Origin: Marsupella aquatica
Taxonomy: Eukaryota > Plantae > Marchantiophyta
Assembly (NCBI GenBank): GCA_973895155.1
Contig: OZ316900.1
Span: 1-64,000 of the forward strand
DNA: 64,000 bases
Direction: 5' to 3'
Below, in pieces: positions 1 through 59,431 of the stretch; the stretch's first letter is position 1, and every line of letters begins with the position of its first letter. The notes beneath the pieces are model-generated. The model was not told the origin of the DNA, searched no databases, and saw nothing but the letters and a program-made list of their open reading frames with translations. A program made the translations under genes and the position numbers.

Positions 1-331
1 TTCGACCCGCCGAACTCTCTGGCCCAAAGTCCGTAGCACCTCGCACGGCAAGTCTCGTGCCCTTTGGGCCCGCCGACGGGTCTTCGCGTGCTGAAATCAT
101 CAAGCCATTTCCGGCCTATTGATTGACCCCGCCAAATAAGTATCCTTCGGACGGACCGGTCGAGTGTATCGCTCTGGTTGGCCCTCTCCCCTATCGTGCC
201 TCCGGCCCTCAGTGATGCTTTTATGGCATGCTTCGGTTCCTCCGCCGTTACCAGCTTCCAGTAAGCCATATACCCCTCGTGTGAAGTTCGGCCACACACG
301 TTTATGACTGTAGGTAACCTAACGGCCGCCC
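1..331 (-). other. Group II intron nad3i140g2 (5' part; continues beyond the window start)
   Basis: Begins GGGCGGCCGTTAG exactly after nt 140 of nad3 (…TGT GGT TTT GA|). Same 5' end as the nad2 intron. Confidence 0.85.
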
Positions 332-6300: not shown

Positions 6301-6898
6301 CGCCGTATACGCTGCATCATCTTCCGATTCAGCAGCTTTTGAAACCAAAAGATTATGCATTTCAAAAGATTATGCAGTTTTTTTTTTCTCCCTATATTTA
6401 GAGCAGTGTATCTATCAGGTAAAGAAAAAGCACAAGGCCCGTGGCCCCATACGACATCACATTACGTAAAACACAGGCCCGTAGGGTCCGAAACGTAATC
6501 GGCCAAAAAACGACCGAACTAGCGATGGCGAATCGCCGAATCAAACCTCTTAGGGCCAAAGGGCACACTTCTTTGTCTTAGGTCCTCCGGCCAGAAATGG
6601 CTTTACCGCGCACGATACCCGAATACGCTCCCTGCGCACTAGGTGGTGCCACCCATGCCCCCCCCGTGCTCAATGGGCCATAGGTTATGCGTCTGGCCTT
6701 TGCCAAAAGAGGTTCGGCAAAGGTCGTTGACCGGCAGCCTGGCAATCCCCGCCGAGTCGGATAATCGGATTTAAATACGGTCGGTTTCGAGTGAGTTAAC
6801 AGGGAAATAAAAAAAATTGCGTGAAATACTTTAATTGATAAGGTGTAGAACGTCCTACATAACATTTATTTGGTCTCACCCTTTCCCACTGATTCGGT

Positions 6899-26639: not shown

Positions 26640-28085
26640 ATAGAGTCAAAGATATATTCACCGAGTCGCGCAACAAGTCAATAAAAAATCTATATTTCTC
26701 TTATCCCCTACTGGTTCGAGGGCTCAAAAGCCCTTCAATCGGGAAGCGCTCCCCCTCTGGTCGAGTGCTATGTACCTCTCCCCTTTCCCGGAGCACCCTC
26801 CCCGCGCACTGCGTCCCTATGGCCGCCAGAGGCGCGGGACTGTAAGTAAGAAGAGGTGCGCAGCACTTTGTGGATGGTTCCGAGGGAGATTTCCTTAGCT
26901 TCACAGGGTCCTACAAAAGGTCGAAGGCCGGAAATGGCTCGTGGATTGATTTGATTCCCGCGCACTTATTTATCGGCCGGGACCCGCGGTAGAGGCCGGT
27001 AGGTCCATTTTTCTGTTTTATAGAAAAAGGGCCGGGCACTGCCAGACAAAGAAAGGGATGATTCTGATAAGTTTTTGGAAATAGATATATATATTTTATA
27101 TTTGTCGTTCACTCGCTGTTCGCTTAGCAAACGGTTGAGAAAGTTCCCAAATGACTTACTACAGTGCTCTCCGAACCGTACTAGATAGTGGCCCATCATA
27201 CGGCTCTCTAACTCTACTTAACTCTCGGATTATATATCAAAAGGGCGCCGCCGCAGCACTATCCCCCTTAGGGGGAAGGAGCACAGCGAGAAGTATATAT
27301 TTTTTTTAACCGGCAGGTCGAGCTCCCCTGGGCCTCTCCCTTTTCGCGCCTTCGGACCCTTCTTGCTTTCAGCTATTCCACTCCACACGCAGCCGGATCC
27401 ACTTGGATCACCTGGAATGATATCAGTTGATTTTGTAGAGTTCAACCCGCCAAATATAGGCAGGTACCGCATAGACCCCTTCCCTTATGTCGTTGCCAGC
27501 GCTCCACTGAGCCGAGAAGAATTTTTGTTTTCTTCTCCCGCTTTCGCACTTGATTGCGGCCGAATAGAAACAAAATATTTGGCCTCTAGGTAAGGTACTA
27601 AAGGTCCTCTGACTTCCAGCCGGGGATTTATTTCACCGTTGGATCTCGCCGGTACAGCCTATGGTTTTTGGTGCCTTGAGATATCGTTTTGTTAATTGTC
27701 CCCAAAGAGTAGGGTAATCAGCTTCCATGCAGTTTACAGCTCCAATCTAGACCTTGCCGCCTTTTCACCTCGACAGGCAGGAAGCACACCAGCGTGCGTT
27801 CGCGCGTTTACCCTTCGACGGGTGAACTGGGTAGCCGGTTGACGAGAAGATAACTTCGATTCGCCAGGCGGGCTTATCTCGTGTGAGTGACACTATTAGA
27901 GCTCACGCGGTGCTATTGAGCAGCAAAAAACTATTTAGCTCTCAACCGCGTTTTTGTGACATGCTATGGTCTCAACGCTCTCACGAGGTAGTGATGAGTT
28001 CTCCACGCTCGGCGCACAGGGCGCCCCGAAAGTATTGAGATTGGCCGCAATCTGTCGGTACCCATAGGCCGTCTAACGGCCGCCC
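26640..28085 (-). other. Group II intron nad2i709g2
   Basis: 5' GGGCGGCCGTTAG after nt 709; domain V at 27173..27206; ends GACTCTAT. Confidence 0.92.
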
Positions 28086-31790: not shown

Positions 31791-32314
31791 TCGGTCCTTG
31801 TCAACCAGCAATTAACCATTGGCACCTGAGCTCTGCAAATGGTGAAGCGCATGAACGTACGTTGCTCGCTCCATGCCTATTGATGGTATATATCAACCAG
31901 GTCACAAATGGTTTGGCCTCTACTTACTCTCTCGTGTGGAAGGATAGAGTTCAAGATGGAGCGGATTACCTATACTACTAGGGACAGGAGTCTAAACGCC
32001 CTTCCAAGGACCGACGTGTAATAGGCGCTGGTGCGCCGTGAAGCTCCTGAAAAAGTCAGGTCAGAGAGCCGATGGGCGGCAGCTATCGCTTCGGTTATTT
32101 TTTTTTGTTCCCGAGGTCCGAAGGTCTCGACCAGCGGGAGAGTTCTTTTATGTCGGAGAAAAGGCCCGAAAACCAGGCTCTACCCGCCCGGGGAGGCCGG
32201 GGGGGACCCCCGCCCGGGTCTTTCATAGCTAGCTTTGCCCCTCCCATTGCGTTCCTTAAAGATTAAATATATTATACAATGAAGTGTGGGCCTTTAGTTC
32301 GTACCAATGTTTCC

Positions 32315-36992: not shown

Positions 36993-37219
36993 GGTGTATC
37001 AAAATACATTATTTTCACAAAGCGTATATAATAAAAACAACTGATAACGATAGTCATTACTCCTATTAGGGCTAGTGAGTAGCCCCCCCCCGCCCGAAAA
37101 AGCGACGAGAAACAAATAGAATTTGCTACGAAATCCAGCTAACGGGGCTGCGTACGGAAACATAGTAATAGACGAGGTAATAGCTAAAGATTAATTGTGG
37201 CTAAAGCACCTAAATCTGC
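36993..37219 (-). pseudogene. nad2: Older, diverged nad2 exon-2 fragment
   Basis: Matches ~26024..26255 with indels (ggtgtatcaaaatacattattttcacaaagcgtatataataaaaacaactgataacg…ctaaagcacctaaatctgc); encodes VISCFYYIRFVKIMYFDTP. Confidence 0.9.
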
Positions 37220-37608: not shown

Positions 37609-38564
37609 GAAAGAATTAAATCTTTTGTCATAAAATATATATTTCATTTTGCCTGCGGCCCTCCTCCCCTAGCTTGAATATTTATGCAAGAAAAAGATAT
37701 ATTTCGCAAATATATTTCTTTTCGTAGGCCATACTCTAAAGTTTTTTGTGAAATTGCGGAGGATTCCTTGTCAAAGAAAGGCAGAGAGCTTAAAGGCTGC
37801 GATCGGGCCGCCGACTTTCGGCCTGAAAGGCTTTAGCCCTTTGTTTTGTCGGACAGTATTTCAATATTGTGGTGTCCGACAAAATAAAGTCCCCTTGGGG
37901 CCCTGCCCATGGAGTGCTAGAAAGATGCAGAGCAAAAAAAATCTTTTTTTTTGTTCGCGTAGCGCCGGGCTACCATAAAGACTAGATTAATGATACAAGG
38001 CGCTGAGAAACCCGGTGGCTCCAATTATGCTGTAGTGAATCCATTTATATAAATTTTAGCAATTCAACTGCCGTCCGGAGCGGTTCATGGTAAGACACGG
38101 ATAGTACCTTGTACAACTATGTACGGTCTCAGCCACTGGAAAATTTGCCCATTGCTATCCCAGGCTAGGACTTGAGCCCTGCCTAACTCAGCGCTACCTA
38201 TGCGGAAGGTTTTAGGTGCTGTGTCGTCCGGCTCCTGCATTAAACGTTCACCAGCCAATTCGGGGAGGGATACTTCTTTGGCTCCGGGGGTTCTCGGGCC
38301 GGCTCTACCTACGATTTACTTCGCCGAAATTGCTGAGAAAGAAGAGATTTCACAGGTGTTTTATGTACCCAGAAAGCTTTTTGTCATGAACTAAGCCACC
38401 AAACTGCGCCGCCAATCAAGCCTACGGGCTCGATTGTCAAAGTAAGGCCCCGTCACTTGGTTATTCCCCGTGCACCAAGTAGCCGCCGATCCTCACCTCT
38501 CTTTCATATAACGAATAGAGCGTCAAATGGGTGTGACGTTAAACATTGTTGCGCTCAAAACTCA

Positions 38565-41872: not shown

Positions 41873-43369
41873 TTAATTCCAATCCAATCTGTAGAAGGTG
41901 AGCTTACGGAAAAGACTGAGCGAGCCTCCCAACGAAGCCATAATGAAACCTATCCAAATACGGAAAATAAAAGGGAGCTTAATTACTGTCGTATACCAGC
42001 CTGTTTCAAAACTTCCAGTTCCGATCAAAGCATATAGATCCGTAAAGAGATTGGTATGTATAGCCACTTTGGTAGTGCTCGTTTCTTGATTCGAAAAATA
42101 GAATCTTTTTTCTGGGAACATAGTCAACCAATGTGAAAAACTGTTATGTTCGAGAACTGTAAAGCCCTTCTTTCGTAAAGAAGTGTGCGTAAATCTACCA
42201 GCCATTTCTGGCCTTCGTCCCTTCGGCGAACCACAGAAGTTTCCTCCTTCCGTTGGTGGAGAGCTAAAGCCTCTACCGTCGGTCGAGAGCTTTGCACCTT
42301 CGGTAGGCCGGGATTGCAACAGGGCAGGACGTGATTCGTCATGCTCAAACATTAATGGGTTTGTCAGGGACATTAATGGGTTTGTCAGGGACGGTTTATA
42401 AATGATTGAATTACCACAAATGGAGTGAAAAGTGGGCCCATGTAATTGATCAATACCTCGCAAAGTGCTACGAACCTTCCCTATATGTAGTTCGGAACCC
42501 AAAGGTGTTTTCCCTGTAGATTGTATCTTTTTCGCGTTGGGCAGAATTACACCCATGATGAAGATGCAAACTCCTCCATGTGAAAGCTTCATATTAACGG
42601 GAGCTTTTCGAAAGTAATAACCAACAGTCATCGGTCTACTCGGTAAGGCGCGAACAAGAAAACATCTACTCCAATTCAAGTTATTTATTCTCAGTGACGA
42701 TATAATAAGCTCGCGTCTTTTCTGCCTGTGAAAAACAAAGAAAGGAAATTTGTGCCTCGCTAACCTATCGCGCCTATTATGAGACGATAAAAAGAACGTA
42801 CGGAAGAGGAAGAAACAAAGCACACCGCAAAAAGATTCCAAATATGAAAAGTCCCCCATGAATTTGATAATAGTAAAATGAAAGAACAACAACAAGGCCC
42901 GACGCAGGGCCCGTACACTGTCAGCCAGGGTCCCGGACTTTGTTTTGTCGGACACCACAAAACCAAAATACTGTCCGACAAGGGCCGCCGGGGACTGTAT
43001 GACAAGAAGGGGAGGAAAAAATGGACGAAAAAAGGAAAGAATTGACAAGGCTTTTTCATCCGGAGAAGAGGAAATATATTGGATTTTCTCAGGTGAGCTT
43101 CTCTCAATTATGTTGGGTAACAGAAGGGGTCTTGCTCTTATCGAAACTATCCTTTTTGCTTCGTCCAGAGAGCGCATGAACCCCCTGGAATGTATGATAA
43201 CTGAAACAGGTAATAAAGATGTAGAAATAGGTATTATAGTACCATTAGAAAAAGGAGCACCTGTGGAAACATCTCTACTTACCAACCATTGAAATAGTAT
43301 GGGTGCTGCTGTGCCACAAAGCACAACCAAAAAAATAGGAAAAAAGAAAAAATTCTGTAGTTGGACCAT
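41873..43369 (-). CDS. ccmFC: Cytochrome c maturation CcmFC (498 aa, intronless, with in-frame insertions)
   Basis: MVQLQNFFFF…LCGTAAPILFQWLVSRDVSTGAPFSNGTIIP…LSHGGVCIF…HTNLFTDLYALIGTG…WIGFIMASLGG. Confidence 0.93.
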   Translation of the reverse strand: MVQLQNFFFFPIFLVVLCGTAAPILFQWLVSRDVSTGAPFSNGTIIPISTSLLPVSVIIHSRGFMRSLDEAKRIVSIRARPLLLPNIIERSSPEKIQYISSSPDEKALSILSFFRPFFPPLLVIQSPAALVGQYFGFVVSDKTKSGTLADSVRALRRALLLFFHFTIIKFMGDFSYLESFCGVLCFFLFRTFFLSSHNRRDRLARHKFPFFVFHRQKRRELIISSLRINNLNWSRCFLVRALPSRPMTVGYYFRKAPVNMKLSHGGVCIFIMGVILPNAKKIQSTGKTPLGSELHIGKVRSTLRGIDQLHGPTFHSICGNSIIYKPSLTNPLMSLTNPLMFEHDESRPALLQSRPTEGAKLSTDGRGFSSPPTEGGNFCGSPKGRRPEMAGRFTHTSLRKKGFTVLEHNSFSHWLTMFPEKRFYFSNQETSTTKVAIHTNLFTDLYALIGTGSFETGWYTTVIKLPFIFRIWIGFIMASLGGSLSLFRKLTFYRLDWN

Positions 43370-43556
43370 CTGCTCTATTCGTTTTGATTATTTCGCTCCC
43401 TCGGATCAGAGAATACGGTCTATTCCCTCGCGTTCGCTCCCATGGAGAATGCGTACAGAAAAAAATATTTTTTAGGTCCGGAAGTAGGCTCCTTCTGGCC
43501 CGATACAACGCAAAGTGCTGAATCGGGCTGAAGTCACTTATAATAGGTAGCTTTTT

Positions 43557-44984
43557 CTATTTAGGCTTTCTACTTGCTACGTATACAATGACTTCGTCGT
43601 GACCTTCTGTGCCCTCCACCATGAGCTTTGCTAAACGATCGGATCGATACGAGTGCGCAGTGCTTCGTGAATGCCACAAGATCTGGTTCACGGGTTTTGG
43701 GACCGTAGGATCTCGGTTTGATGATGGAACAGATAATGCCCCAACTAGCTGGGTACCTGATTGCTGCTTCATTCTGAAAAGAGAAGTAAAAGATATGCTG
43801 GTAATTATAGAGAAAAAACACCATAAAAAGATTCCTCGTGTCGAATCTGTAGCAAAACTATGAACGGAAGCTAGCAATCCGGAACGCACAAAAAAAGTTC
43901 CTGAAATACGACATAAAAAAGTAACCATATTGAGAAACAAAGTCCAATCATTCAATTTAGGTAAAATGACTGAATGAATACAAGCCGTAGCTAATACCCA
44001 AGGCATGAAAGAAGCATTTTCTACGGGATCCCAGAACCACCAGCCGCCCCAGCCTAATTCATGATAAGCCCACCAACTTCCTAGCAATATGCCTACCGTT
44101 AAAAAGCACCAACATGTCAAGATCCAAATTTGAATTTGTTTCCACACTACCGTATTCGCGCTACGGGTCCCACCAAAATGAAGATACATAGTATTTGTTT
44201 TACGAACAACACTTTCAGCCCGCTCTCTATGGGCCAATGACCCAAAAGGCACACATAGAGCGGTTCTCGTGTGTGGAAATCCACGAGCCATTTCCGGCCT
44301 TCGGACCTTACTTGGCTTTACCGGAAAAGGACCAAAAAAGAAAAATATATTATTCAAACGCGGCCCGTTTATTATTCCAGATAAACATAAGCAAAAGCCA
44401 ATAGCACTTGCGACGTATCCCGCATAAATGCGAGGAGGATGTATAGCTAATATGGGATCTTGTAAAACAGGATTTAATTCCCCAAGTGATTTAGTACAAA
44501 CAAATGAAATTCGAACGAAAGGATTGGAACTTGCTAATAGAAAAATAGGAAAAAATAAAGCAATGCCTTTATAAATTTGCTGTTCATCCATGAGCGAAAT
44601 TGCCCGCTGGTCGAGACCTTCGGACGAAAACAAAAAATAAATATTTTTTTTCTTTCCGCCCTTTGCTTGTTCCGATACATTGCTGGGTCGGGCCGGGTAG
44701 CAAAAAAGGAATCCGTAAAAACTTGGGGTCCAACACCATAATAACAGACTACCCTCATGATTAGACCAGCTTCCTGATATTCTATAAAACAAAGGCGCAT
44801 TAGCATTTGGGTTGGTGAATACGTTGTAATTGGAAAAGTCGGAAGGAATATAACAGAACAAAATACCAAAGAAAGACATAGTGAACAAAAAAAAATAGAG
44901 TGGAACAGCCACGGGACGCAGCTTGTTAGTTAACGCAACGGAAATACTCAGTACTAAAAAATAATGGCCCAATTCCGGTGACAT
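43557..44984 (-). CDS. ccmFN: Cytochrome c maturation CcmFN (475 aa)
   Basis: [13 protein letters not shown]…[12 protein letters not shown]…[28 protein letters not shown] (WWD motif)…SVHSFA. Confidence 0.95.
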
Positions 44985-45709
44985 AACATTATAAACTTTG
45001 CTTATAATTGGCAACAAAAAAAGATTTTTTTGCCGTACAACCCTGGGTTCGTTACGGCATTTGGCATGCCGATTATGAGTCCTACCAACCTCAATAACGG
45101 AGGATTACACACGTCGCAAGCTAGCCGAAAAACTCTCACGGAATAGCTTCTATGAACCCTATGGAGGGGATAGGGAGCCCAGCATAGAGCCATACGCGCC
45201 TTGCCTTTTTTTTCTGCGAATCAGCAAGCAGAATTGGCGAGCAGCTCTATCAGTTGCTTTTTCACGGATCATGGAAACTTTGTGTTCTTCATGATTGACG
45301 TCATACATCATGGGCAGTATTTACCCATCAATACGAGATCTTGGGTATAAAAAAAATATATATATTTTTTTCATACCTAAGGGCTAAGCCAGCATTGACG
45401 GGGTCCATATAACGAATAAAAAGAATTATTTGACGAGGTTTTTGAATGAAAGAAACTTACCCTTGAGCTGCTACGGCCTGCTGGTTCTTAACCCTCGAAC
45501 CAATAGCCCCCTCTAAATGTTTCAACCAAATTGTTGGCTCACCGCACTACGTGCCTTGCGCGCGTTTTCCTTCCCATAGGCTTTTGGCTCCCGATGACAA
45601 AAGGCCCGCCGCAGGGCGGGGCGCTGTCAGACGGGACCAGGTACTGTCCGACGTAGAGAGAGAAGAAGAAACTGACGAAATAAAAATTATTGACAAGGCT
45701 CCAGGAAAG

Positions 45710-46396
45710 TCATTGGCTTTTTCGCCGTAAATAAAAAGATAGAATTATTTGACGTGTCTCCAAAATAAACAAAATCCCAGTTAAAAAGAAAGAGCTAGCA
45801 AAGATTAAAAAGATTGGAATGGGCATAGAAATATGTATTGAAGTACCAAATTGGCTAATGCTTGAAGGTTGATGCAATGTATTCCACCGGTTGACAGGAA
45901 ACTTAATTATTGGTATATTGATTGGCCCTATACATATAAAAATAGAAGCAACATCCGCAGAAAACTCTTGAAAACGCAGTGCACCCAGGTAAATAAAAAA
46001 CAGGATTAATACAGAGGTTAAACGAGCATCCCATACCCAAAAGGTCCCCCACATAGGTTTTCCCCAGAACCCCCCGGTGACTGGGGTGAACAACGTAAAC
46101 GAAGCACCTATTTTGGCACCGGTTTTGGAAAATAACTGAAAAAGGGGATGTTTTGTTAATAAGAATAACACACTGCTAATAGCCATTGCAATATAAATAA
46201 GTAAACTCATCCAAGCTGCAGGAACATGCACATAAATAATGCGATAATTTTCACCCTGTTGAAAATCGGATGGTGCTACCCAAATACTTAAATAAATAGC
46301 TATCGCTGTTAGAAACCAGCAAAATCCAATGAGAATTTGCGCGTAACGGAAAGAGCAGCACATGAAAAGAAAAGGACGTAATAACGGGACATACAT
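45710..46396 (-). CDS. ccmC: Cytochrome c maturation CcmC (228 aa)
   Basis: IIYVHVPAAW…GGFWGKPMWGTFWVWDARLTS…WNTLHQPSSI. Confidence 0.96.
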   Translation of the reverse strand: MYVPLLRPFLFMCCSFRYAQILIGFCWFLTAIAIYLSIWVAPSDFQQGENYRIIYVHVPAAWMSLLIYIAMAISSVLFLLTKHPLFQLFSKTGAKIGASFTLFTPVTGGFWGKPMWGTFWVWDARLTSVLILFFIYLGALRFQEFSADVASIFICIGPINIPIIKFPVNRWNTLHQPSSISQFGTSIHISMPIPIFLIFASSFFLTGILFILETRQIILSFYLRRKSQ

Positions 46397-47666
46397 AGTA
46401 ATTTTCTAGCTTTTGTCAAACAGAAACGCGAAGCGGGAAAGCTAAAGCAAACCTGCGCTGCGCGACGTTCCAGCCGTTTAAGCCCTGGGACCTCGGTTCT
46501 AGAAGCCGAAGTTCGTTCGTAAAGCCCTTTGCGCTTTTACTGAAACGCTTATTTCACGGAAATTCGAAAAAGATAAGTATTTTTTTACTTTTTATAAACT
46601 TACGCCGCTTTTTCGATTCAAAAAAGATGGTTTTTTCATGGAATAGAAAATGCTGTTTTTTTATCATCTTATTCAAGGGTCGACCAAAGTAATTTATCTA
46701 CTTCTTAGGTCGCCCGCGTCGACGGACATCGGTTTCTGCAATACCTTTGGGATTTTATTATATGATTATTGAATGAAATCAATGGTTTCAAGCAATATGA
46801 TTGTAAAGGCACCTCTGGCGCATTTTAATTAATTCGCCGAAACACGTTCATAGAACGTAAAATACAATTACTTTTACTTCCCTGTACTTGCATACACTAT
46901 ACAAGGATTTCTTTTCCAATATTCACACGTCTAACATAAAAGGTGGTGTTGATTTGGACCTTTTTCTATTCGAAAGACGGTTCGTACTCGAACGTAGTAT
47001 TACAACCCGACGTGGTGACCCACATATTTATTCACAGGTCGGAAACACAACCTTTTTACGTTGTCACCATAAACCTATCCGCCATAAGGGAAACAATTTC
47101 CGCCAGTGAACGAGCCGCCGGAGTCGACTGGGCCTTTGGGAAAAAATAAAAAGTCGCTCTCAAGCTATGGTACAAAGACTGGAATTACGGTGAGCTTCAT
47201 CAACACCGCGGCGAATTAGCTTAGGTGCGTGACCACGCCGAAGGAGATAGTTGCGAATACTAAACACGATTACTCGACTATTGGACAAATCCACCAAGTC
47301 CTCCATTGCCGCGGGGCGGAAATACAGACGAAGCGGATTTTATCGTCTTACAGACCGTCAAGTACTTCGGTACACTGTTGTAACAATTTGACGGTGGGGT
47401 ACGTAAGATTTGATAGCTTCTTCTCTCGAATTTTTTCACCACCCTTGAGCAGCACAACACCTTAAAATTTCAAGGCTATCGTTCATCCCCCTGCCCCTCT
47501 TAGCCTTTTGTAACGGCCTCCCGGCGATTAATCGAAAGGTTAAGGGCGGCATATATGCCGAGGTAGGTCTTTTTCACGGCAGCGTGCACACTTCCACTTT
47601 TTATGTTTAGGGTCGATCAAATCGAGACACTTGACCAGAGGAAAAATTGGTGAAAAGAATTTTAAA

Positions 47667-48314
47667 TCATTTTGCCAGTAAAGTTTGAAAAGTTATTGAG
47701 ACTAGAATGGGATAAAAAAATAGAAACAAAAGTAAATATCCTATTAATGAAATAACATGGAACCATTCTGTTTCGATAGAAGTACAAAAAACGATTGAGG
47801 GCGATAAAGTGGGTAAGGTTGTTAGATTTTGCAAGCTGTTCCAACCATTGGATGTGATTCCAAGAGCCAAACGAGAATGAATACCACACATAAGAGTAAA
47901 TATCTGGCTTCCTATAATAATAGTGAACCAATTCATTTTGGATTGATCAAATTGGTACAGAAGTTGTAACACGGGAAAACTACAGAAAACACCACTTATT
48001 TGAAGAACCCAGTGACCATACAATTTAGAAAGTAGGATTTTTTGCAAACAATAACCGCTTAAATAATACAATTCGAGTGTACCGTCTTCAAAATCATTTT
48101 GAAAAAAACGTTCAGAGAGAAAGGCAAACAACAAACAAATCCAAATTAAACCTAAATGAGAATGACATAAGAAATCTTTGGAAAAGCCTATCGTTAAAGG
48201 CATGGCTACGATATACAACGGAGATGGAGAAAAAGTCGTTATTAGTATAGAGAAATTGAGTGAAATATGTTGATAAAACAGTTTCATAAAGATTTTCAAG
48301 GCACGTAGCGCCAT
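47667..48314 (-). CDS. ccmB: Cytochrome c maturation CcmB (215 aa)
   Basis: KDFLCHSHLGLIWICLLF…DFEDGTLELYYLS…QNLTTLPTL. Confidence 0.93.
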   Translation of the reverse strand: MALRALKIFMKLFYQHISLNFSILITTFSPSPLYIVAMPLTIGFSKDFLCHSHLGLIWICLLFAFLSERFFQNDFEDGTLELYYLSGYCLQKILLSKLYGHWVLQISGVFCSFPVLQLLYQFDQSKMNWFTIIIGSQIFTLMCGIHSRLALGITSNGWNSLQNLTTLPTLSPSIVFCTSIETEWFHVISLIGYLLLFLFFYPILVSITFQTLLAK

Positions 48315-48822
48315 CGAGAGAAGTTCCTTTTTTTTTAGTTTTTGGATCCAAATATATATATATTTTTTTTCGTGGAGTTACGCCGCGAATGGACTAAATA
48401 CGGGGGAGGCCCAGAAAATGCGTTGAGGCCAAAGATGGAGAACGCGTTTTCAAGAGTCTCGTTCCCTTCTCTAACCCGCTCCCCCATCGTCAAGGGAAAC
48501 AGCCGGTAAAGATGCGTAGTCAAGTGTAGTCGCCGAGGGGGAGACAGTAAGCAGTGACGAGCTACGAAAAAAAATATATATATTTTTTTTACATTGTAAT
48601 ATTTTGGGCTTTAGCTCCCGATCAAAGCGAGAGGCACGTAGTGCTCGACCCGAACCTTCGGCCCGTAGGGCTGCAACACCTCCTATGGCGGCGGAGTCTT
48701 TGCCAATCTACGGGATTTCCGGGCTTACCCGTGGCTGACGACGACGCTGGCCGGAGCACAGCAGAGACAAGTTTTTTTCGATTCGCTAATCGAGCAGGAC
48801 AAAGTAACAGCGTTTGATTCTT

Positions 48823-49536
48823 TCAAAGCCCTTTTACTTTCACCTTTGGCCTCTGCGATCTCTTCGCAAGAATGACTGTTTTCACAATCAAATTACAGAA
48901 TAAGTATACAAACTTTATAGAATCATCATTCACTGGAACGGGATAAGTTATTAATTTATGTAATCTGTTTGGAATATTAGAATCCACCAAAGCTACAATA
49001 GGTATTTGTAATTGATTAGCTTCAAGTATAGCCATGGAATTTTGATTTGCATTTATTATTACTAAACAATCCGGAATATTGTGTGTCACGATTCCTTCAA
49101 AACATTTTTGCATCTTCCTAAAACGTGGGAAATAATCGAAAGGCGAAGATGTAAAAGCGTCTTTCAAATTGGGATGTGCAGAGAAATCTCGAAAGTGTTT
49201 TTGTACTCTTCTCATATGTTTCCAATTGGTCAAAAAACCCCCAATCCATTTATGATTGATATAGCTCTGATTGGTTCTTTTTGCCACTCGTTGAATTATT
49301 CTATTATATTCCGGATTGGTATTTACCAATAATAAATGGCCTTTTGCACCAATGATAGATCCAATCAAATTACAAGCCCTTCGTAAACAAATAAGTGTTT
49401 TTTCTAAATCAATAATAGCCATTTCATTTCTAAATCCGTATGAATATCCCCGAAAATCAGGAGTTGGTATCCGATGGCCCAGATATGCGTTTGTACTCAG
49501 TAATTTTTGAATGACCAACAAATTAGAATTGCACAT
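48823..49536 (-). CDS. rps2: Ribosomal protein S2 (237 aa)
   Basis: MCNSNLLVIQKLLSTNAYLGH…IIDLEKT…KWIGGFLTNW…EANQLQIPIVALVDSN…YPVPVNDDS. The longer ORF extension runs through trnF and is ignored. Confidence 0.96.
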   Translation of the reverse strand: MCNSNLLVIQKLLSTNAYLGHRIPTPDFRGYSYGFRNEMAIIDLEKTLICLRRACNLIGSIIGAKGHLLLVNTNPEYNRIIQRVAKRTNQSYINHKWIGGFLTNWKHMRRVQKHFRDFSAHPNLKDAFTSSPFDYFPRFRKMQKCFEGIVTHNIPDCLVIINANQNSMAILEANQLQIPIVALVDSNIPNRLHKLITYPVPVNDDSIKFVYLFCNLIVKTVILAKRSQRPKVKVKGL

Positions 49537-49554
49537 AGTTCCTTTTTCCTTTTC

Positions 49555-49628
49555 GTTTAGATAGCTCAGGTGGTTAGAGCAAAGGACTGAAAATCCTTGT
49601 GTCAGTGGTTCGAATCCACTTCTAAACA
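49555..49628 (+). tRNA. trnF: tRNA-Phe(GAA)
   Basis: GTTTAGATAGCTCAGGTGGTTAGAGCAAAGGACTGAAAATCCTTGTGTCAGTGGTTCGAATCCACTTCTAAACA. Confidence 0.96.
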
Positions 49629-51095
49629 CAATAAATAAGGGTCGGGTGGGACGGCGGCCCCCCCCGTTATCGGATGTAGGGCCGGGGGCCACCGCCCGCT
49701 CGGGCGAATGGCACTAGGGATCGCGGCGGCGGGGCTCCACACACCATCGTAGCCCCGTATAAATAATAAATCTCGAACGCCGTTCACCCCTACCCCTGGA
49801 ATGAACGTTCGTCGAACCTCGGATACTTTATTACCTCGCTCCCGGTATATGAAGTTGTTTACAAAACGCTTCCCAGAAATAGGCTTTAATGAGCCAGTCC
49901 TCAGACATTAACGCTCATATGCTGGGTACGAAGGCGTCTACTGGGGCGGCGGGCCCGGCGGCGGCCTGGAGCATAACTAATAAAGGATGAGGCGCTTGGT
50001 ACTTTGTGTTTGCTTTTTGGGAAAAAGTGACGAATTCGAACGATCACGTTTAGCTCAATCGTACATTTTGGCAATCAAATGGTACATTTTTGCAATAATA
50101 AATGGCAGAGGTAGAAGGCAACGACGGGTGAACGATTTATCGCAAAAATGTACCATTTCTCGTCTACCTCAGTGTCGCAAGAGGTGAACCCATTTTCCTT
50201 ACCCTTCTCCCTCGCCATCTCTGGTAACCGAATATACCAGCAGAAACTCACAAAATTTTTGAACCTTTTCTCACCACGAAAATCGTGAAGGAAAAGAAAA
50301 AGGGTCAGGTTCTTATCAGAATTACTGGAAATTATGCATCTACAATTGGGTTTAGTAATGAGCATCAAAATGATGAAGAGGAGGATGATAATGCCCATAT
50401 CATGATTATTCCCAACGATGTATTTATCATTGGAAATAGTAATGGTCATAGAAATTGTAGAAGAATGATCAAGATGATCATAATTAAATTACAATCATCG
50501 TGATTATGATTATCAACACAGGGATTAAGATTCATATATATATATATACAGCAGATATATCCTTTCAATATCCTTGATCATCATTATGACGATCGGAGAG
50601 ATCATCATAATTAACCCCGTCCTCGTGGTGACTTCTCTACCATTCAGATAATGAATGACCTTATTTGGTGGATTACTGATTCTACTGGATAGTAATAATA
50701 ATAATGTTGATGTCTATCCATCGACTCGATTCTTACTTCATTCGGATCATTCATATATGTATATGATCAAACCATATACATATTTTCTGCTGTAACTCCC
50801 TTTATCCGGATCACCGGATTGAGATGAGAGATTCACAAAGAGAGGCTTGTATCTCATTGTTCTCAGTTACCCCCCCCCCTATTTATTCCCTGTTTAAACC
50901 ATCACGGCCGGGCTTATTCCGTCATATACTTCATTACCCATATTTTTCTATTTCCCACCAATATATTTTTTTGCCGCTGGCTGCTTGTTGTTCTCACCGT
51001 CTACGTTGCATACGGTGGGTAAGCTTAAAGGTTAGTCGAGATCTTTGTACTCAGTAGGTAATAGGTTAGTTACAGGAACAATAGAATCGTGAAGT

Positions 51096-51166
51096 AGGCT
51101 AAGGACGGATTCGAACCATCTTTATAGGATTTGCAATCCAATACATTACCTTTATGTTACTTAGCC
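51096..51166 (-). tRNA. trnC: tRNA-Cys(GCA)
   Basis: GGCTAAGTAACATAAAGGTAATGTATTGGATTGCAAATCCTATAAAGATGGTTCGAATCCGTCCTTAGCCT. Confidence 0.94.
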
Positions 51167-52603
51167 ATTTCTTATATTTTTTGGACCGGAATAAAAAAGA
51201 ATATGAAGAACAACAAGATTGGCATCAGCCAAAAACGCTTTGTCACAACCATTAATATGACTCAATCGTACCAACGGACTTTTTTTACAACATCATTTTT
51301 TTTTAATACCACCTCGAGAGGAATACAGCAACGTATTCAACTACCGATTGGTATTCATTCGATAACCATCTCTTTCCTTTCATTCAGTTCAACCTTGTGG
51401 AAGGAGCTAAATTTTGTCATATGTGAGTAATGGCCGTTGCTACCTACTTCGTTTTATTGAAGCTGTTGTCGATTCGGAATCCCGGCCGGGGATTCCATAG
51501 TTTTTATTGTATCGAACATTATCAAATGCAATATATGTTCAATAAAATTATTTTCATATTACGTAAAAAATGAAGGGAAACTGCGTAGCACCTCTGCCTA
51601 TAGTCCCGTGCGTGCCATTCAGGTCCCTCTCCCGTAAAGCCAAAGAAGTCTCCTTCGGACCCATGGGCACGTAGTCGGGGAGCAGTATAAGGCCCCGAGG
51701 GGGCCCGTAGACCTTAGGTAGGGAGGGGGCGTGTAGATTGGGTGAAGGCATGTAGTGCTCGACCCGAACGCTTTACGTAATCCTCGCTGCACCTTATTCC
51801 ACGCGGAAACATCGATTTTCACAACATCACGGAACAAGTACGCCCTTTGGTTTTCCATTGTGAATACTAGGGATTTATAACGAGGTGTAGCCAGTCAAAT
51901 AGCCCGACGCTACGTAGTATAACTTCTTTCATGGTTACAGATAAGTATAGCAAGACCGATAGTTCTCTCGGGCTTACTTGGTTATCGTTTCCGTCACGAT
52001 TTATTCCCGTGATTTAGGAGAGTTGACCGACGGCGAGGTCGGGTTTCTAGCTCTTGAATTGATTATGTCTTCAGTCACGGCATTCTTTTCAAATTCGAAA
52101 AGCATGCGGGCACTCTGAGCGGCGGCGCTCAGGTCTAGATAAAAAGTTAAAATTCACTTTGCTTTGGTAGCTTCCGACTTTCTTATTCAGCCTTTATATT
52201 TCTGTTTATATTTACGAATTCAGATGCTAGCCGGTAAGGTGGTCCGTTTATTACGACGAGCCTTGCTTGGTGCTAAGCTGAGAATGAAGCGCATAGAGCC
52301 TACCAAATACTACTATCTGGTAGGAAAGAATTCATTATCTCCACCCAGGCTCTTCCTAATCTATATAAATCTTGAGTATTTCGTGCCTCAGGCATGGTCC
52401 GGCGGGGCCAAAGGTTATCGCTCATATATGGTATTATACATATTATGTCTCTCCCGTTAACCCGACGCCGTCCCCTTCCCCCCCCTTTCGGGCCACAAGG
52501 GTTAGGGTTGATTTTAGTATATCGGGTTGTTCTTAGTTTGGCTGCATTTCGATTGATCAGCCATGAATGGTCATTGTTTTGGCAAAAACAAAAGTAAACG
52601 GTT

Positions 52604-52690
52604 ATGCTAGAAGGTGCAAAATTAATTGGAGCAGGAGCAGCGACCATTGCTTTAGCGGGAGCTGCTGTAGGTATTGGAAACGTTTTTAGT
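52604..52690 (+). CDS. atp9: ATP synthase subunit c, exon 1 (87 nt)
   Basis: [29 protein letters not shown], followed by GTGCG. Confidence 0.97.
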
Positions 52691-55054
52691 GTGCGCCTCG
52701 CCGGAGCGCGTTTGGATCAGCGAAGGTTAACAGATTATCGCACGGCCTTAGCCCTAACCTGTAGCGGGAACAGACCGCAGGGAACCATAGCATGGGTTTC
52801 AGTCGAATCTCGTCGCACGGTGTTCACGAGTGCTTCAGAGTCAAGCGTTACTCCCTCCAACGAAGGAGGCCCAGAGGAAGGCACTAAGGGCCAACTAAAC
52901 CCTTTGTGCAAACAACCCCATGGGGGAAACTGCAGGAAGCAGGAAAAGTCGCTCACTAACCTAAACGACGAGCAAACAACCAAACGTGAAAGCAAGGGAT
53001 CACCCCAATGGACCCCGAAAAGGTTAGCACCTAGGTGCCAAACCCCGGAGGACCAAGGTATATCCAAAAATGTAATGGGTGACAGATCAGTCATAAGTAC
53101 TCCGAGGGATACACTGGGCAAACCAAGTTGCGTATACGACGATGCCCGTAATGTGAAAGACTCTGAGGGAAGGACTGTAGATGGTAATGTGCCACCACAG
53201 AAAGGCGCGGAAAAAACTTTTTTATGTCAAACAGCCCGCAGGCACGTAGTGCGAAGACAGAGGGAGAGGGTCGACCAACAGGAGAGGACGGGAAATCGGA
53301 GACTGGGAAAAGCTGAAATATTTTTTTTTGGGAGTGTAGCGGAACCGGCGGAAGCAACTACTAAAACTAAGGCCAATAGAGGTGAGTTTAGACCAGTGAC
53401 GCCTCCCGCGCTCGGTCGCGTCTTCTATGAAGACATTTACAATATAGACAACCTTAGGGCTGGCTATAAAAGGCTAAAAGGAAATGTAGCCCCGGGAATC
53501 GACGGTAGAACTAAAGCGGACATGACCGACAAGGCCCTTGAAGAACTATCCAAAGAGTTGAGAAGGCAGGCATATGCCCCAAAACCCGCCAAACGGATAA
53601 TGATTCCTAAACCAGATGGCGGCAGTAGGCCCCTTTCTATTGCTTCGACGGTCGACAAAGTTGTGCAATCCACTTTAAAAGGACTCATGGAACCGCACTT
53701 TGAGTCGCTTTTCAGAGACTCAAGCCACGGGTTCCGCCCTGGGAGAAGCTGTCACGAAGCCCTGCGAACCCTACGTTACTCGTGGACGGCACCGACTTGG
53801 CTTGTACAAATTGATATTAAGAAAGACTTTGACAAGATTCATCACGACCTGCTTATTAAGGAGATGGGATCAGTACTGCGATCTAAAGCACTACAGGATC
53901 TTATGCGAAAGCTACTTAACGCAGGATACATAGATGTATATAACCTTACGGATCGAGCGGGATACAACACAGAGGGCGTTCCGCAGGGCTCTATACTATC
54001 CCCGCTTTGTACCAATATCTTCCTACATAAGTTGGATTGCTACGTCGAAGACATACTCGTACCCAAATACAATGTAGCGAATATGCGCCTCGCGTCGGCA
54101 GAATATAGTAGGAAAAGGCTTGATATCCATTCAAAATACAAAGCCTTCTCCGAGTACTATACAGAATTGGGGCAGGCCATCAAAAACATCGAACACCTAG
54201 AATGGATGAACCGCGAGCAACAAAAGAAATATATTTTCGTAAAAAAAAAAGATTTTTTTGTAAATTTCTTCTTCTTCCGAAACCCTAAAGTTTCGTGCCC
54301 TTTGGGCCGAAAGACGCTTCCAGAAATGGCTGAGAAAGAAGGATTAGAAAGACTTAAGTACCTACGGTACGCGGATAACATAATTCTAGGTGTTATGGGC
54401 ACCAAACGAGATGCCCTAGATATTATAAAAGCCGTGCAAAACTTCCTGCAGGAAGAACTGGAGTTGGACATAAACGAACATAAAATCTTACACGCAAAGT
54501 CCGGGATGGCCAAATACTTGGGCGCATTAGTAATATATTACGGCACCCGAAGTGTGGAAATCTCAAGCACTGGCAAGATATCCGGTGTCAACCAAGTAAG
54601 ACTCCGATCTCGTCCACAACTAATTGCTCCCATAACGGACTTAATAACCAAAGCCTTGGAACTTGGATACGCGAGAAAAAACGCCAAGGGCTTAGCTCGG
54701 GCAACCTCCAATCCACGATTGGCTTCCTCGGAGGACAAACACATTGTTACCCACTTCTCATCGGTGATACGCGGCATTGTTAACTACTATTCATTCGTGA
54801 ACAAGCGCTCTTCCCTGTGGAAAGTTGTGTCCATCTATAAGAAGTCCTGCGCGCTAACCTTGGCCAGAAAACACGGCTTACGGTCAGCCAGGGCTGCTTT
54901 ACCCAAATTTGGTCCGAACCTGCGGATCACAGAAAAAGGCAAGGAGGTTGCGTCACTATACTACCCCACCTCTCCAAAAACTACGGGGAAATTCCATGCT
55001 ACTAGGTTCAGTCAGGTTACTATACTCGAGGAAGCATATTATGGAGTCAGGTGA
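52604..55054 (+). CDS. Intron-encoded RT/maturase, in frame with atp9 exon 1 (816 aa fusion)
   Basis: [63 protein letters not shown], and domain X ([10 protein letters not shown]…[11 protein letters not shown]). Confidence 0.93.
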
Positions 55055-55643
55055 CTACTATATTCGAGGAACCCCGTGATGGAGTGGCGTGGATGGAGCG
55101 GGCACCTACTCACTCACAACGATAGGCTCTTCTATCTATCCAGCGCCTCCTCCGACAATAAAAAATCTGTTTAGGTCCTCCGCTGGTCGAGTGTCTCGCT
55201 CTGGTCGACCTTACCTCTCTGGTCTTCGCGCCTCTCCTCTCTTTCCTCTAGCACTCGTGCATGGAAATCTACGAGCCATTTCCAGTCTGCGAACCCCTCC
55301 TTATCAGCTAGGCTAGTTTAAATTTTTTTTCCTTCGTATCACTCGGGACGACTTTTTCGAAATATCCCGGTCTCGGCGCTCTTGCTGGGGCAACCATAGC
55401 CAAATTGAGAAAGCGGATCACGCTATGCCTACAATGACTTAGTTAGGAGGAGGTAATGACTTAGTTAGGAGGAGGTGCAGGGGGGTAGTCGCGGGCGGCG
55501 GCGCCCCCCCCCCCCCGTCTAAGGAGGGCTAGTAGCGCTTATACGGCCAAGCTACAGAAGCTGTAGAAATTGCCATGGACGAGCCACATGCGGGGAAACT
55601 CGCACGTGTGGTTCTGACCGGGGGGTAAGAACCCTATCGGTAT
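52691..55643 (+). mobile_element. Group II intron atp9i87g2 carrying a maturase ORF
   Basis: GTGCG 5' end; domain V GAGCCACATGCGGGGAAACTCGCACGTGTGGTTC at 55581..55614; ends CCCTATCGGTAT. Confidence 0.95.
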
Positions 55644-55781
55644 TCTTTGATTCATTCTGTTGCGCGAAATCCATCATTGGCTAAGCAATTATTTGGTTAT
55701 GCTATTTCAGGTTTTGCTCCAACTGAAGCTATTGCTTTGTTTGCCTTAATGATGGCATTTTCAATATTATTCGTCTTTCAA
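55644..55781 (+). CDS. atp9: ATP synthase subunit c, exon 2 (CAA edited to UAA as stop)
   Basis: [21 protein letters not shown](S)GFA(P)[13 protein letters not shown](S)ILFVF then CAA at the conserved stop position; total 225 nt = 74 aa + stop. Confidence 0.93.
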
Positions 55782-56115
55782 TGTGCTGCAAATATTTCTT
55801 CTTTTCTTTCTGATTCCCTAAAACGAGCACCTCAGGGCTCGAACGTTTCGTACGTTCGAGCCCTTCCCTCGCCGCGCGCGCGTGAAAGAGCTAAAGAAAG
55901 AGAAACAAGGGGTATTTATTTGACCTTTGCATCCGCTTAGACAATAGGGCCCCCAGGCTTCAGCTCGCGGCACCTAGAAGGCTTTGACTTACCACCCCGG
56001 TCGGGGAGCGAGAAACGTAAAAGGAAATAAATCTTTTTTACATATATTTTTATGCTTACTTTTACAGGGTTCAAGGGAGATTTCATTTGGCTTGTCGAAC
56101 CCGTAAAGCCAAGGA

Positions 56116-56162
56116 AATCTACAAGCCATTTCCGGCCGAAGGCCGGAAATGGCTTGTAGATT
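56116..56162. repeat. Perfect palindrome (22-bp stem, GAA loop); the complete form of the dispersed GAAATGGCT repeat family
   Basis: aatctacaagccatttccggcc gaa ggccggaaatggcttgtagatt. Confidence 0.95.
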
Positions 56163-56338
56163 CTTCGGACGGACTCGACGGGGGGAGGCACGTAGTGCGA
56201 AAACCTGAAGGATAGGTGCATAGCACTCGACCAGACGATTGGAGGAGCGGGGCGCCTCTTTTTCGTTTGGTTTTCTACTCTACATAGCGCCGCGAGTGGG
56301 CGGCTTAATTTGCTATGTTAGTGAGCATAGCGAATCCA

Positions 56339-56412: not shown

Positions 56413-57224
56413 TATTCCATAAGACCAGAGTAATGACCGTTGGGCTGAAGGACGGTACAAGGATGCATATTACATTTCGCGCTAGATTGACATAATAGTA
56501 GATCCATTACGAACCACCCGCGGCGGCTTGGCAGCTGGGTGATGTGTTGAAGTTGATTCCGAACTTTGCTATAATATTGTTTTTGGGAGAAGCGAATGAA
56601 GGCCGTAGGGGGGAGGGAGGAAAGAAACGGGAAAAGCGCATGGCGCTGCGACCACCGAGAGGCTGGAGGCCTGCGTCGTACAGTAATTGTCCACACAGCA
56701 CTAAAAAAAATATATATCTCTTTCTCCCATTCTCTCAAAAACTGGAAAAGGGCCCCGCCTGTCAAACGTAACGAAGTAAAAAAACTGACAAAAAGGAAGA
56801 ACTGATGAGAAAATAGAGAAACTGACGGGACACTAGCCGAAATGGCTGAGGAAGAACTGCATTACGAAGAACCCTCTCAGCCGGCGAAGTGCGCGGAAAT
56901 CTACAAGCCATTTCTGGTCCCCGGCTCCTCGTCCGGACCCAGTTCTAAGCTATCTCTCGACCACTTTGATTGGTAAAGCGGTCAACAGATAGCTGTGACC
57001 AAATATCTGATGGTGGCTCTCCCCACTTCGTTCTCTCGCTTATCCTAGTTTTTCTGTTTCCCAGTTCCAAAATATGGGAAGAAAAAAATATATCTATTGT
57101 TTTATCTATCGCTACGCGGTGGATGAATCGCTATACGCTCTGTTCATGGCTCGCATTCCAGGTCAGAATTTTTTTTCACTGTTGTCCAATTAAGGAATTG
57201 AGATTATCATAATGAAGAATCTAC

Positions 57225-57297: not shown

Positions 57298-57990
57298 AAC
57301 TTTGGATCTAGTAATTCCGGCAGTTCGTATACGCGTCCAAAGATCACTTAGCGGAGGGATCATTACGAGCCATTGCGCTAAGCCTAACAGGCGAAAATTC
57401 GATATATATATAAAGAATGGGAAAAGACCAAGCGTGTTTCCGGGCTCAGAGAAGGAAAAATGTATTATTCTCTTCTCTCCATCCCTGTTTAACCATGCGA
57501 GCATAACCAAGTTGAGCAAAGCACGCACTTTGTAATGGCATTATAAAAATTTTTCTACGATCGTAACTTCGTGACTCAACTTGCATGAGCTGAACGTTAG
57601 GGCGCAGCTAAACCTTCGTGGATGGCTGCTGGGGTCGGGCACCCCTACTACGAAAGCAGCGTTGCATGAAAAGAATCATTATAGGCTCCGGCCGCGGGGT
57701 TGTGAGACAAAAGTTATCGTCCCTGCGGGCAGATACCGTAAAGTTTCAGGTCCGGAGAGATACTCTACGAAATATTTCTTCGTTTGACATTTTCCACCCA
57801 TAGGTGCGACGCTTCTATAAATGGCTGAGAAAGAAGGCGCGTAGCAGAAAAAATCTAGATTTTTCTACCCTTCTCCCATATTGGGTCGAGCATTATGTGG
57901 CTAAAATAGTTTTTTTTAACTACGCTTTTATCTTCCACATTTTCTTATCATTCGAGGCCTAGTGATTGATTGCATAACTTCAGGGGGTTG

Positions 57991-58075: not shown

Positions 58076-58541
58076 TGAGTTGAAATTGGTTCAATCGATT
58101 TTTGTACCGCGGGAAAGGAAAATATTTTGTTTGGGTAAATCAGTTTTTTTGCCCGACAGGCCCCCTGGGGAAACTGTCGGACAGTCGCGGGCCCTTGTCA
58201 GACAGTATTTCGGTTCCGTGGTGTCCGACGAGACAAAGTCCGGGGGGGGGCGGTCAGACAAAAAAGTCCAAGTCCTATACCTTTTGTTTTTTCCCGCATC
58301 GCGTGCCTGCGGGCAGATACTTTTAAGTTTTTGCGCCTTCTTCTTTTTCGTAGAGCGGTCTCCTTTGGACTCTTCCTTTGGGCCCGCCGGAGGGCCGAAG
58401 GCTAGAAATGGCTTGACGATTTCCGCCCACGACAGAGGTGGCTCCTCGACCCTCTCCTTATAGGTCGAGTGCTCGAGGGGCCATAGGTTTCGGGAAAACG
58501 CATTGAAGAGAATGCAGTTGATTGATTCGTTAACATACCCA

Positions 58542-58625
58542 CGGATGGAGAGGGATTCGAACCCCCGGTATTCTCGATACTTCGGTTTTCAAGACCGACT
58601 CTTTCAACCGCTCAGACATCCATCC
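58542..58625 (-). tRNA. trnS: tRNA-Ser(UGA)
   Basis: GGATGGATGTCTGAGCGGTTGAAAGAGTCGGTCTTGAAAACCGA…GGTTCGAATCCCTCTCCATCCG. Confidence 0.95.
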
Positions 58626-59431
58626 CTTTCGTAATAAGCTCTTGAGCTTGAAGCAAACAATAAGAAACCTAATATTCAATTACTATGTAAATTAAAGTTC
58701 AGAGAATACACGAAAATTTTTGTTTTGTTTGGCTAGACTCGTAGAGCTCGACCCGAACTCGAAGGGGCCAAAGCACGGAGTACGCGACCCGAGTGGGCCC
58801 GAAGGCTAGAAATGGCTTGACGATTTCTGCCCACGAGCACCAGAAGGATAGGTCTTGGCTAAAACGTTCAAGCCAGAGTCGGAGTATCCCGGCGGGCTAT
58901 TCTGTATTCCACGGGGCTTCGCGTAAGTAATTAACTAAACATGGCCGTTCAAAATCTGCAGGAGCTGCTGCCGGAGGAGGATAAAATCTATAGATTTTGT
59001 GTGCCCTCTACCGAGGAATGAACAACACGCGTCAGCAGCCCGGAGCTTTATTGGTTCCATTAGCATGGGGGGTGTAGCCGATCGAAGAGCGAGAATAAGC
59101 TAGTCAGTGAGAATAGCTCTACTTTCTACTAGTAGCTAGATTTGTCCCTAAGCCTCTCGCATAACAGCTTTATGCTCTGTGCTTTGCTCACTCTGCGGGC
59201 TTGCTCCTTTTCATTAAAGCTTCCCCCTACAGGCCATAGAAGCATGCCGCAGGAAATAAAAATATCTTTTTCGCCCATACAGATATGCTACTCGTTCAGC
59301 TAGCTTCCAGTCTCTAGTCACTGTGTTCAACGAGCTTCGCGATACAAAATAACCTCATTTCGCGAATCAAACAAGTGTTGATCATAAATCATCGGCGATA
59401 ATGATGGTAAAATTCTATTTTTTGTCTCAAT

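Follow-up and report, generated by a model that had tools for sequence, protein, structure and literature searches.

The mitochondrial genome of the leafy liverwort Marsupella aquatica carries several families of dispersed mini-repeats of 25-55 nt. We analysed the first 64,000 nt of contig OZ316900.1 (hereafter, the window), in which one such repeat, here called family A, had been flagged inside two protein-coding genes, ccmFC and ccmFN. The analysis showed an old, diverged family: two copies are translated in frame and fixed in all liverworts, one has been locally duplicated into a palindrome, and two others form a near-identical local pair. In the genes, family A is an ancient fossil, not an active jumping palindrome. 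We consider it probable that old mini-repeats of the spacer type were written into tolerant gene loops in the liverwort stem lineage and then fixed. This would be a datable case, from land-plant mitochondria, of short dispersed repeats that became translated protein segments and stayed fixed through the history of a whole plant division.

Family A is a diverged dispersed repeat

Allowing at most one mismatch, the 13-base core of family A (GCCATTTCYGGCC) occurred 10 times in the window, against 0.27 occurrences expected, and no shuffled sequence reached 10. An nhmmer profile built from the copies detected 11 significant arms at 10 loci (E 5e-14 to 6e-8; Table 1); both arms of a palindrome, within 56110-56165, were among them. 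Family A is a real, non-random dispersed repeat. Its unit is about 40 nt long, and five of the six reading frames of its consensus (TCGTGCGCGGAAATCTACAAGCCATTTCCGGCCTTCGG) are open.

The preliminary description of this DNA had quoted the repeat in ccmFC, in ccmFN and in the maturase encoded in the atp9 intron. These sequences were found where it had placed them, and translation confirmed that the three open reading frames (ORFs) are open and contain the quoted peptides. About a dozen further partial copies had been listed; most of those sites were significant, but the sites near 56835 and 57825 belonged to a second family (B) and those near 22070 and 60475 were marginal (E 0.03-0.14).

Five of the 10 loci clustered in the tRNA-rich region at 55.2-58.9 kb. 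Near-identity was restricted to local pairs: the arms of the palindrome agreed at 22 of 22 positions, and the two direct copies flanking trnS-UGA, 404 bp apart, agreed at 39 of 41 positions, with 38 nt at 97% identity (to 58799-58836). The remaining pairs of copies had 21-34 of 41 positions in common (51-83%). The two genic copies matched the consensus at 34/41 and 36/41 positions and were no closer to other family A copies than those were among themselves. The copy at 26906-26952 was identical to the ccmFN copy over 26/26 nt. Similarity stopped at the edges of the repeat, and the gene-specific flanks showed none.

Scanning viral and genome contig collections with the repeat patterns returned single chance matches without similarity to the window. 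A metagenome scan with the maturase returned three distant relatives only and no liverwort mitochondrial DNA (mtDNA). An exact-sequence look-up of five proteins of the window among clustered proteins found none of them.

Table 1. Repeat copies and associated genes in the window
Feature	Position	Strand	Evidence or remark
Family A, spacer upstream of trnW	82..136	+	nhmmer E 2e-10
Family A with 6-nt deletion, spacer near trnN	6575..6617	-	nhmmer E 6e-8
Family A, non-coding, probably intron, upstream of exon 25879-26676	26906..26952	-	nhmmer E 5e-11
Family A inside ccmFC, antisense to the gene	42180..42233	+	nhmmer E 2.8e-13
Family A inside ccmFN, antisense to the gene	44266..44316	+	nhmmer E 4.9e-14
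Family A in atp9 intron, downstream of maturase ORF	55253..55298	+	nhmmer E 2.5e-11
Perfect palindrome of two family A arms, between atp9 and trnM	56116..56162	strandless	arms of 22 nt each, 3-nt loop
Family A, trnM-trnK spacer	56885..56934	+	nhmmer E 3.7e-12
Family A, direct pair flanking trnS-UGA (58542-58625), member 1	58377..58434	-	nhmmer E 1.1e-13
Family A, direct pair flanking trnS-UGA, member 2	58784..58837	-	nhmmer E 1.2e-12
Family B in maturase	54313..54342	+	27/30 match to 57808-57837, E 2e-4
Family B, spacer between trnK and trnL	57808..57837	+	
Family D, hairpin-type, inside ccmFC, aa 128-146 (nt 384-438)	42932..42986	-	self-BLAST
Family D, spacer	58190..58244	+	55 nt, 89% identical to ccmFC copy
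Family D, spacer, 17-nt hairpin arms	37846..37892	+	self-BLAST match to ccmFC copy
Family F inside ccmFN, aa 131-139 (SSEGLDQRA), liverwort-type linker	44603..44625	-	23/23 match to 32116-32138
34-aa maturase segment, liverwort-type orthologues only	54230..54331	+	maturase alignment
ccmFC ORF, 498 aa, uninterrupted	41873..43369	-	best matches liverwort CcmFC, 93% (Calypogeia); Pfam PF16327 on matches
ccmFN ORF, 486 aa as listed	43557..45017	-	best match Gymnomitrion concinnatum CcmFN, 97%
atp9 exon 1 fused in frame to group II intron maturase ORF, 816 aa	52604..55054	+	

The copies in ccmFC and ccmFN are shared by all liverwort classes

The ccmFC copy (nt 1137-1190 of the gene) encodes amino acids 379-397 (CGSPKGRRPEMAGRFTHTS), and the ccmFN copy encodes amino acids 234-251. 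Both are read in the same frame and give a peptide of the GRRPEMAGRF(P/T)HT type. The positions of the repeat in the two genes are non-homologous, and the presence of the same 40 nt at non-homologous positions means that at least one of the genes received the repeat. An in-frame insertion in three unrelated proteins had originally been proposed; the in-frame repeat holds for ccmFC and ccmFN, but CcmFN and CcmFC are halves of one ancestral CcmF.

We compared the window with other liverworts at the protein level, aligning its CcmFC and CcmFN with orthologues from liverworts (18 and 17, respectively). The alignments included two species of Haplomitrium, the Marchantiopsida Asterella, Cyathodium and Riccia, as well as Metzgeria, Aneura, Riccardia, Fossombronia, Makinoa, Moerckia, Pleurozia and several Jungermanniales. 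Nearly all liverwort orthologues, covering all classes, carried the peptide at the same position in CcmFC and in CcmFN. Makinoa, Heteroscyphus, Aneura, Riccia and Cyathodium had in-frame deletions of part of the peptide, and the Pellia sequence was strongly diverged. The peptide was absent from the aligned orthologues of mosses, Psilotum, gymnosperms, angiosperms and Nitella. An apparent likeness between the ccmFN peptide and moss KEGRAEDNQMLGAF vanished once additional outgroups anchored the shared LKNIF motif, and we did not count it as evidence that the repeat arose in the gene.

Since the peptide occurs in all liverwort classes and is absent from these outgroups, the event predates crown liverworts, and the protein comparisons indicate that the genic copies have been carried ever since as translated loop sequence. 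The preliminary description had treated shared peptides in distant liverworts as the mark of ancestral sequence, and such peptides were found in Haplomitrium, the Marchantiopsida, the Metzgeriales and Fossombronia; a recent insertion does not fit this distribution. Orthologue alignments had been expected to reveal empty sites. The segments are missing from non-liverwort orthologues, but no empty-site allele was seen within the liverworts in the 17-18 orthologues per gene. Nor did we see target-site duplications at the family A copies. What survives of the proposed mobile or recombinogenic palindrome is that a dispersed repeat lies in frame and encodes extra peptide, but the genic copies are ancestral and are not hairpins. 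The main correction is that family A is not an active mobile-element system.

The ccmFN copy lies inside a 79-aa linker that stands in place of an 11-residue interhelix loop in the solved Thermus CcmF structure (6ZMQ), so extra sequence should be tolerated there. The linker flanking the repeat peptide was as conserved as the peptide itself, as expected from the slow evolution of liverwort mtDNA. CcmFC matched no solved structure, either as a single sequence or as a profile. AlphaFold models of CcmFC and CcmFN, made from alignments of 21-22 sequences, had mean pLDDT values of 28 and 31 and were useless.

A single copy forms a palindrome

The hairpin at 56116-56162 proved to be perfect, as had been noted, with 22-nt arms and a 3-nt loop. 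Its predicted DNA fold had an energy of -30.2 kcal/mol and a z score of -8.9 relative to shuffled sequences. By contrast, the nine single-arm copies of family A, including both genic copies, had z scores of -1.4 to +0.8. Only 56116-56162 folds beyond shuffles, so the family is not palindromic in general; the inverted repeat or hairpin typical of Rickettsia palindromic elements (RPEs) and of GC clusters was found at this locus and at none of the nine others. The palindrome had been taken as the full form of the element. We rejected this view on two grounds, the lack of a fold in the single arms and the existence of unrelated spacer palindromes.

The minus-strand arm of the palindrome retains the usual TTCGG continuation of the family, and the plus-strand arm retains the usual GGAAATC start. 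These edges fit a snap-back at a small GGCC-TTC-GGCC hairpin. The palindrome would then be a local fold-back duplication of one family A copy, seeded at that copy's own GGCC-TTC-GGCC hairpin. Unrelated perfect or near-perfect palindromes with arms of 15-22 nt occur in spacers at 15017-15057, 23237-23268, 25047-25085 and 50077-50158. Judging from these, recurrent fold-back duplication appears to be general in this mitogenome, and to have occurred once at a family A copy.

Between the genomic stop codon of the atp9 exon 2 ORF and the palindrome lie 176 nt, and trnM follows 177 nt after the palindrome. That ORF extends about 50 codons beyond the usual end of atp9. The CAA codon at approximately 55779-55781, directly after the LFVF at which recognisable atp9 ends, could be converted to a stop codon by C-to-U editing; if so, the distance from the atp9 stop to the palindrome might be about 335 nt. 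Stem-loops are known from the 3' regions of plant mitochondrial mRNAs, and a pea atp9 mRNA with 3' inverted repeats was reportedly described by Dombrowski and colleagues in 1997. By analogy, the palindrome may serve as a transcript-end stem-loop in the 3' region of atp9.

Other mini-repeats lie in lineage-specific loops and spacers

The maturase site, first described as a half copy of the same repeat, had an E value of only 0.21 with the family A profile, which ruled it out as a family A half copy; it matched the spacer copy of family B at 27 of 30 positions instead. Family B also occurs at 56840 and 3995. A core of 9 bases is common to families A and B, and an exact 13-mer is found in both the ccmFC copy and the maturase copy. 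For two such families to have a 9-mer in common by chance, we estimated a probability of about 1%; therefore, A and B look like related modules rather than one family.

We aligned the maturase with those of five liverwort-type sequences, Treubia and nine algal or other maturases. A 34-aa segment was present in the liverwort-type orthologues, including those of Marchantia and Treubia, and missing from the algal relatives. This segment is a mosaic of an AT-rich run, a family C motif (CGTGCCCTTTGGGCC; also at 59, 6564, 21597 and 33995) and family B.

Family D, about 50 nt in length, has a hairpin of 8-17 bp. Its copy in ccmFC falls within a clean, liverwort-only insertion of 60 aa, which was absent from the five mosses, three gymnosperms, Silene and Nitella in the alignment. 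Family D is a cleaner case than family A of a repeat that coincides with an in-frame insertion. In the self-comparison, all dispersed repeats touching ccmFC or ccmFN (family A twice, family D and family F) were located in lineage-specific linkers, and none was located in the conserved core.

A near-palindromic 11-mer with a CGTA core, GCACGTAGTGC, occurs at 7558, 15000, 45554 (minus strand), 48634, 53242 and 56188, with the six occurrences mostly in spacers and adjoining other mini-repeats. We take its CGTA core to recall plant mitochondrial promoter cores. AT-rich palindromes made of A runs, TATATA and T runs, often GC-clamped, occur at 25668-25692, 31248-31268, 45344-45377 and 48567-48590, in spacers downstream of genes such as ccmC and rps2. 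In ccmFN and in the maturase insertion, comparable AT-rich runs are translated as KKNIYF-like peptides.

Proposed origin and alternative explanations

In the account that we favour, short pieces of spacer-type repeat would have been copied, in the liverwort stem lineage, into tolerant, length-variable loops: two sites in ccmFC, two in ccmFN, and the atp9-intron maturase. The route would have been break repair with templated patches, or ectopic conversion, and not a transposase. The repeat modules have neither a transposase nor terminal structure, and the mosaics of modules A, B, C and GCACGTAGTGC are more easily explained by patchwork repair than by one transposing unit. RNA-mediated copying, as proposed by Liu et al. 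2011 (PMC3187804), is also possible. Slow mitochondrial evolution in liverworts would then have frozen the inserted pieces, and any residual activity of family A would consist of low-frequency homologous recombination between copies.

Several points weigh against this account. The ccmFN linker after the LKNIF anchor has 44 aa in liverworts versus 48 aa in mosses, so that no clean empty site is present. There is also a weak H-x-R-(S/T) likeness, in which PHTRT of the ccmFN peptide aligns with LHNRS of mosses, and part of the repeat might therefore have arisen inside ccmFN. Likewise, an F-x-H in the ccmFC peptide aligns with an F-x-H of mosses and seed plants. Because five of six frames are open, use of the same frame in both genes has a chance of 1 in 5; it could nevertheless be a sign that the repeat began as coding sequence or that the peptide is under selection. 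Retention of the genic segments in mRNA and protein is assumed from reading frames that seem to have stayed intact for more than 400 million years. Finally, we infer three components of the account: the direction of copying from spacer to gene, the repair mechanism and the stem-loop role of the palindrome in the atp9 3' region.

Copying in the opposite direction is the alternative that survives best, and we consider it unlikely. Here, the sequence would have arisen inside ccmFC or ccmFN, and short pieces of the gene or of its transcript would have been retroposed or otherwise copied to spacers, to introns and to the other ccmF gene. Such a history would agree with the report of ccmFC pieces in many spacers, for which retroposition was favoured (PMC3187804), with the several reverse transcriptases encoded by liverwort mitogenomes, with the weak likeness of the C-terminal part of the peptide to moss and seed-plant sequence in both genes, and with the shared frame of the genic copies. 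However, similarity never passes the core of about 40 nt into gene-specific sequence, and only the linker stretches missing in non-liverworts were "copied", never the conserved core. Retroposed fragments should match beyond the core and sample the gene at random. Neither was found: all 12 of 12 ccmFC pieces reported in Marchantia fall in two stretches, which is unexpected if random gene pieces had been copied out. The genic copies are also no closer to other copies than those are to each other, and the second ccmF gene would still have had to receive an insertion in frame.

We give little weight to the idea that family A is a functional element, either a cis-acting RNA or DNA signal for binding, processing or stability, or a peptide with a role in the CcmFN/CcmFC heme lyase. 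The very long retention of the peptide in both CcmF halves would suit a function, as would the concentration of five of the 10 loci in the tRNA-rich 55-59 kb region and the location of the palindromic copy between atp9 and trnM, a place where plant mRNAs are known to have 3' stem-loops. Yet the equal conservation of the flanking linker, the partial in-frame deletions of the peptide in five genera, the antisense orientation of the genic copies relative to most others and the lack of supported structure in single arms all argue otherwise. Equally doubtful is domestication, in which a repeat-derived peptide of 13-16 aa, or its RNA, would have been kept in CcmFN and CcmFC of every class through an acquired function. 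If it had occurred, the candidates for that function would be the binding of a factor specific to liverworts, or a motif for assembly or interaction of the heme lyase halves, and a single ancient burst would have assembled the liverwort-only ccmF and maturase loops from repeat modules of the spacers.

A palindromic mini-element that is still mobile and inserting into genes, in the manner of RPEs or GC clusters, is very improbable: a perfect 47-nt palindrome exists, there are many copies, some in frame in genes, and the numbers of ccmFC-type pieces differ strongly among Marchantia, Pleurozia and Treubia, but the genic peptides are common to all liverwort classes, which largely refutes mobility for those copies, nine of the 10 loci are single arms without significant fold, the copies are only 51-83% alike except for two local pairs, and neither target-site duplications nor empty sites were seen.

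Relation to earlier work

RPEs, which Ogata and colleagues are said to have described in 2000, are dispersed repeats that lie in frame in unrelated protein genes and add peptide in tolerant regions, as family A does. They differ in being bacterial palindromes of 100-150 bp whose presence varies between species, whereas family A is about 40 nt long, non-palindromic in its genic copies and fixed across a whole plant division. The initial analogy with RPEs and GC clusters held for multiple dispersed copies, some in frame in genes (11 significant copies, with the ORFs open). It broke down in the fold test against shuffles, in which the genic copies lacked the defining hairpin, and in the absence of presence/absence polymorphism for the genic copies, the peptide being found in all liverwort classes. 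The GC clusters of yeast mitochondria and the hairpin elements of Volvox and sponges are GC-rich hairpins that form recent, polymorphic insertions, some with target duplications. Hairpin elements are also described in placozoan mtDNA (PMC7813641). Like family A, these are short mitochondrial repeats that can lie within coding sequence and leave the reading frame intact (for example, in var1); unlike them, family A has no hairpin, with only family D and the single palindrome having one. The Bpu elements of the Cycas mitogenome, reportedly described by Chaw and colleagues in 2008, are short interspersed repeats of about 36 bp, likewise in a plant mitochondrion. Bpu elements have hundreds of copies with conserved termini and are mostly non-coding, whereas family A has about ten copies per 64 kb, including translated ones.

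Family A had not gone wholly unnoticed. Liu et al. 2011 (Liu, Xue, Wang, Li and Qiu; PMC3187804, Table S2) compared genes with spacers and tabulated "pseudogene pieces" of ccmFC and rtl. Their ccmFC (1102-1188) pieces, in Marchantia and Pleurozia spacers, correspond to family A, and their ccmFC (318-461) pieces, in nine Marchantia spacers, correspond to family D; by position in the gene, we regard them as the same repeats. In Marchantia, 12/12 ccmFC pieces fell in nt 318-461 or nt 1102-1188, and Pleurozia had two pieces and Treubia none. The pieces were read as retroposed gene fragments, with some gene portions recurring in spacers as "favoured". That study differs from ours in deriving the pieces from the gene by retroposition, in recording only matches of more than 50 bp, and in not including the ccmFN copy, the palindromic copy or the coincidence with liverwort-only protein segments. 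Our results allow these favoured pieces to be read differently: the stretches that recur are precisely the ones missing from orthologues outside the liverworts.

Dong et al. 2019 (PMC6902596, Table 2) reported direct repeats of 51-63 bp, 410-418 bp apart, which flank trnS-UGA and recombine, with alternative reads amounting to 32% in Bazzania and 18% in Trichocolea. The family A pair flanking trnS-UGA in the window, 404 bp apart, matches these in position and spacing, on which its putative orthology is based rather than on sequence. Pairs of at least 50 bp were catalogued there, without families or coding presence. Other liverwort mitogenome papers considered only repeats longer than 50 or 100 bp, and we found no description of these short repeat families as such in open-access text. 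The practical consequences are modest: apparent ccmFC pseudogene pieces may mislead annotation, and the repeats mark sites of low-frequency recombination, including the direct pair inside the adjacent genes ccmFC and ccmFN, whose members are 2,086 bp apart.

Genes and longer repeats of the window

The best protein matches of the ORFs in the window were liverwort mitochondrial proteins, which identifies it, at the level of sequence, as a stretch of the mitochondrial genome of a leafy liverwort (Jungermanniales). The window contains exons of nad5, nad4 and nad2, the genes ccmFC, ccmFN, ccmC, ccmB, rps2 and rps4, atp9 with its intron maturase, 19 tRNA genes, group II intron domains and the start of the small-subunit rRNA. 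At many sites its proteins have Pro or Ser in place of the Leu or Phe of other plants, as expected when the genomic sequence of a leafy liverwort is read without RNA editing. Matches of the maturase ORF, including Marchantia Mp_Mg00880, carry PF00078 and PF01348, and domain V of the atp9 intron lies at 55579-55643. The exon ORF at 25879-26676 encodes a complex I subunit of the antiporter type (nad2 or nad4; Pfam PF00361).

The start of ccmFN is uncertain (45018-45070). The listed ORF begins at a TTG at position 45017; other liverwort CcmFN entries are annotated with an N-terminal extension of 17-30 aa (MPNAVTN...), and several database CcmFN entries begin at a later MSPELGHYF.

We also observed longer repeats. 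A 536-bp direct repeat with 99.4% identity (1163-1698 and 25705-26240) overlaps the nad2-type exon region, and a third copy at 36993-37219 is 86% identical. It probably represents the nad2 pieces and long repeats known from liverwort mitogenomes, and its length suffices for recombination. The spacer between ccmC and ccmFN (45054-45484) shares five collinear segments of 24-74 nt, at 84-96% identity, with 9481-9680 and 13169-13393, and these segments form a medium-sized dispersed repeat just upstream of ccmFN.

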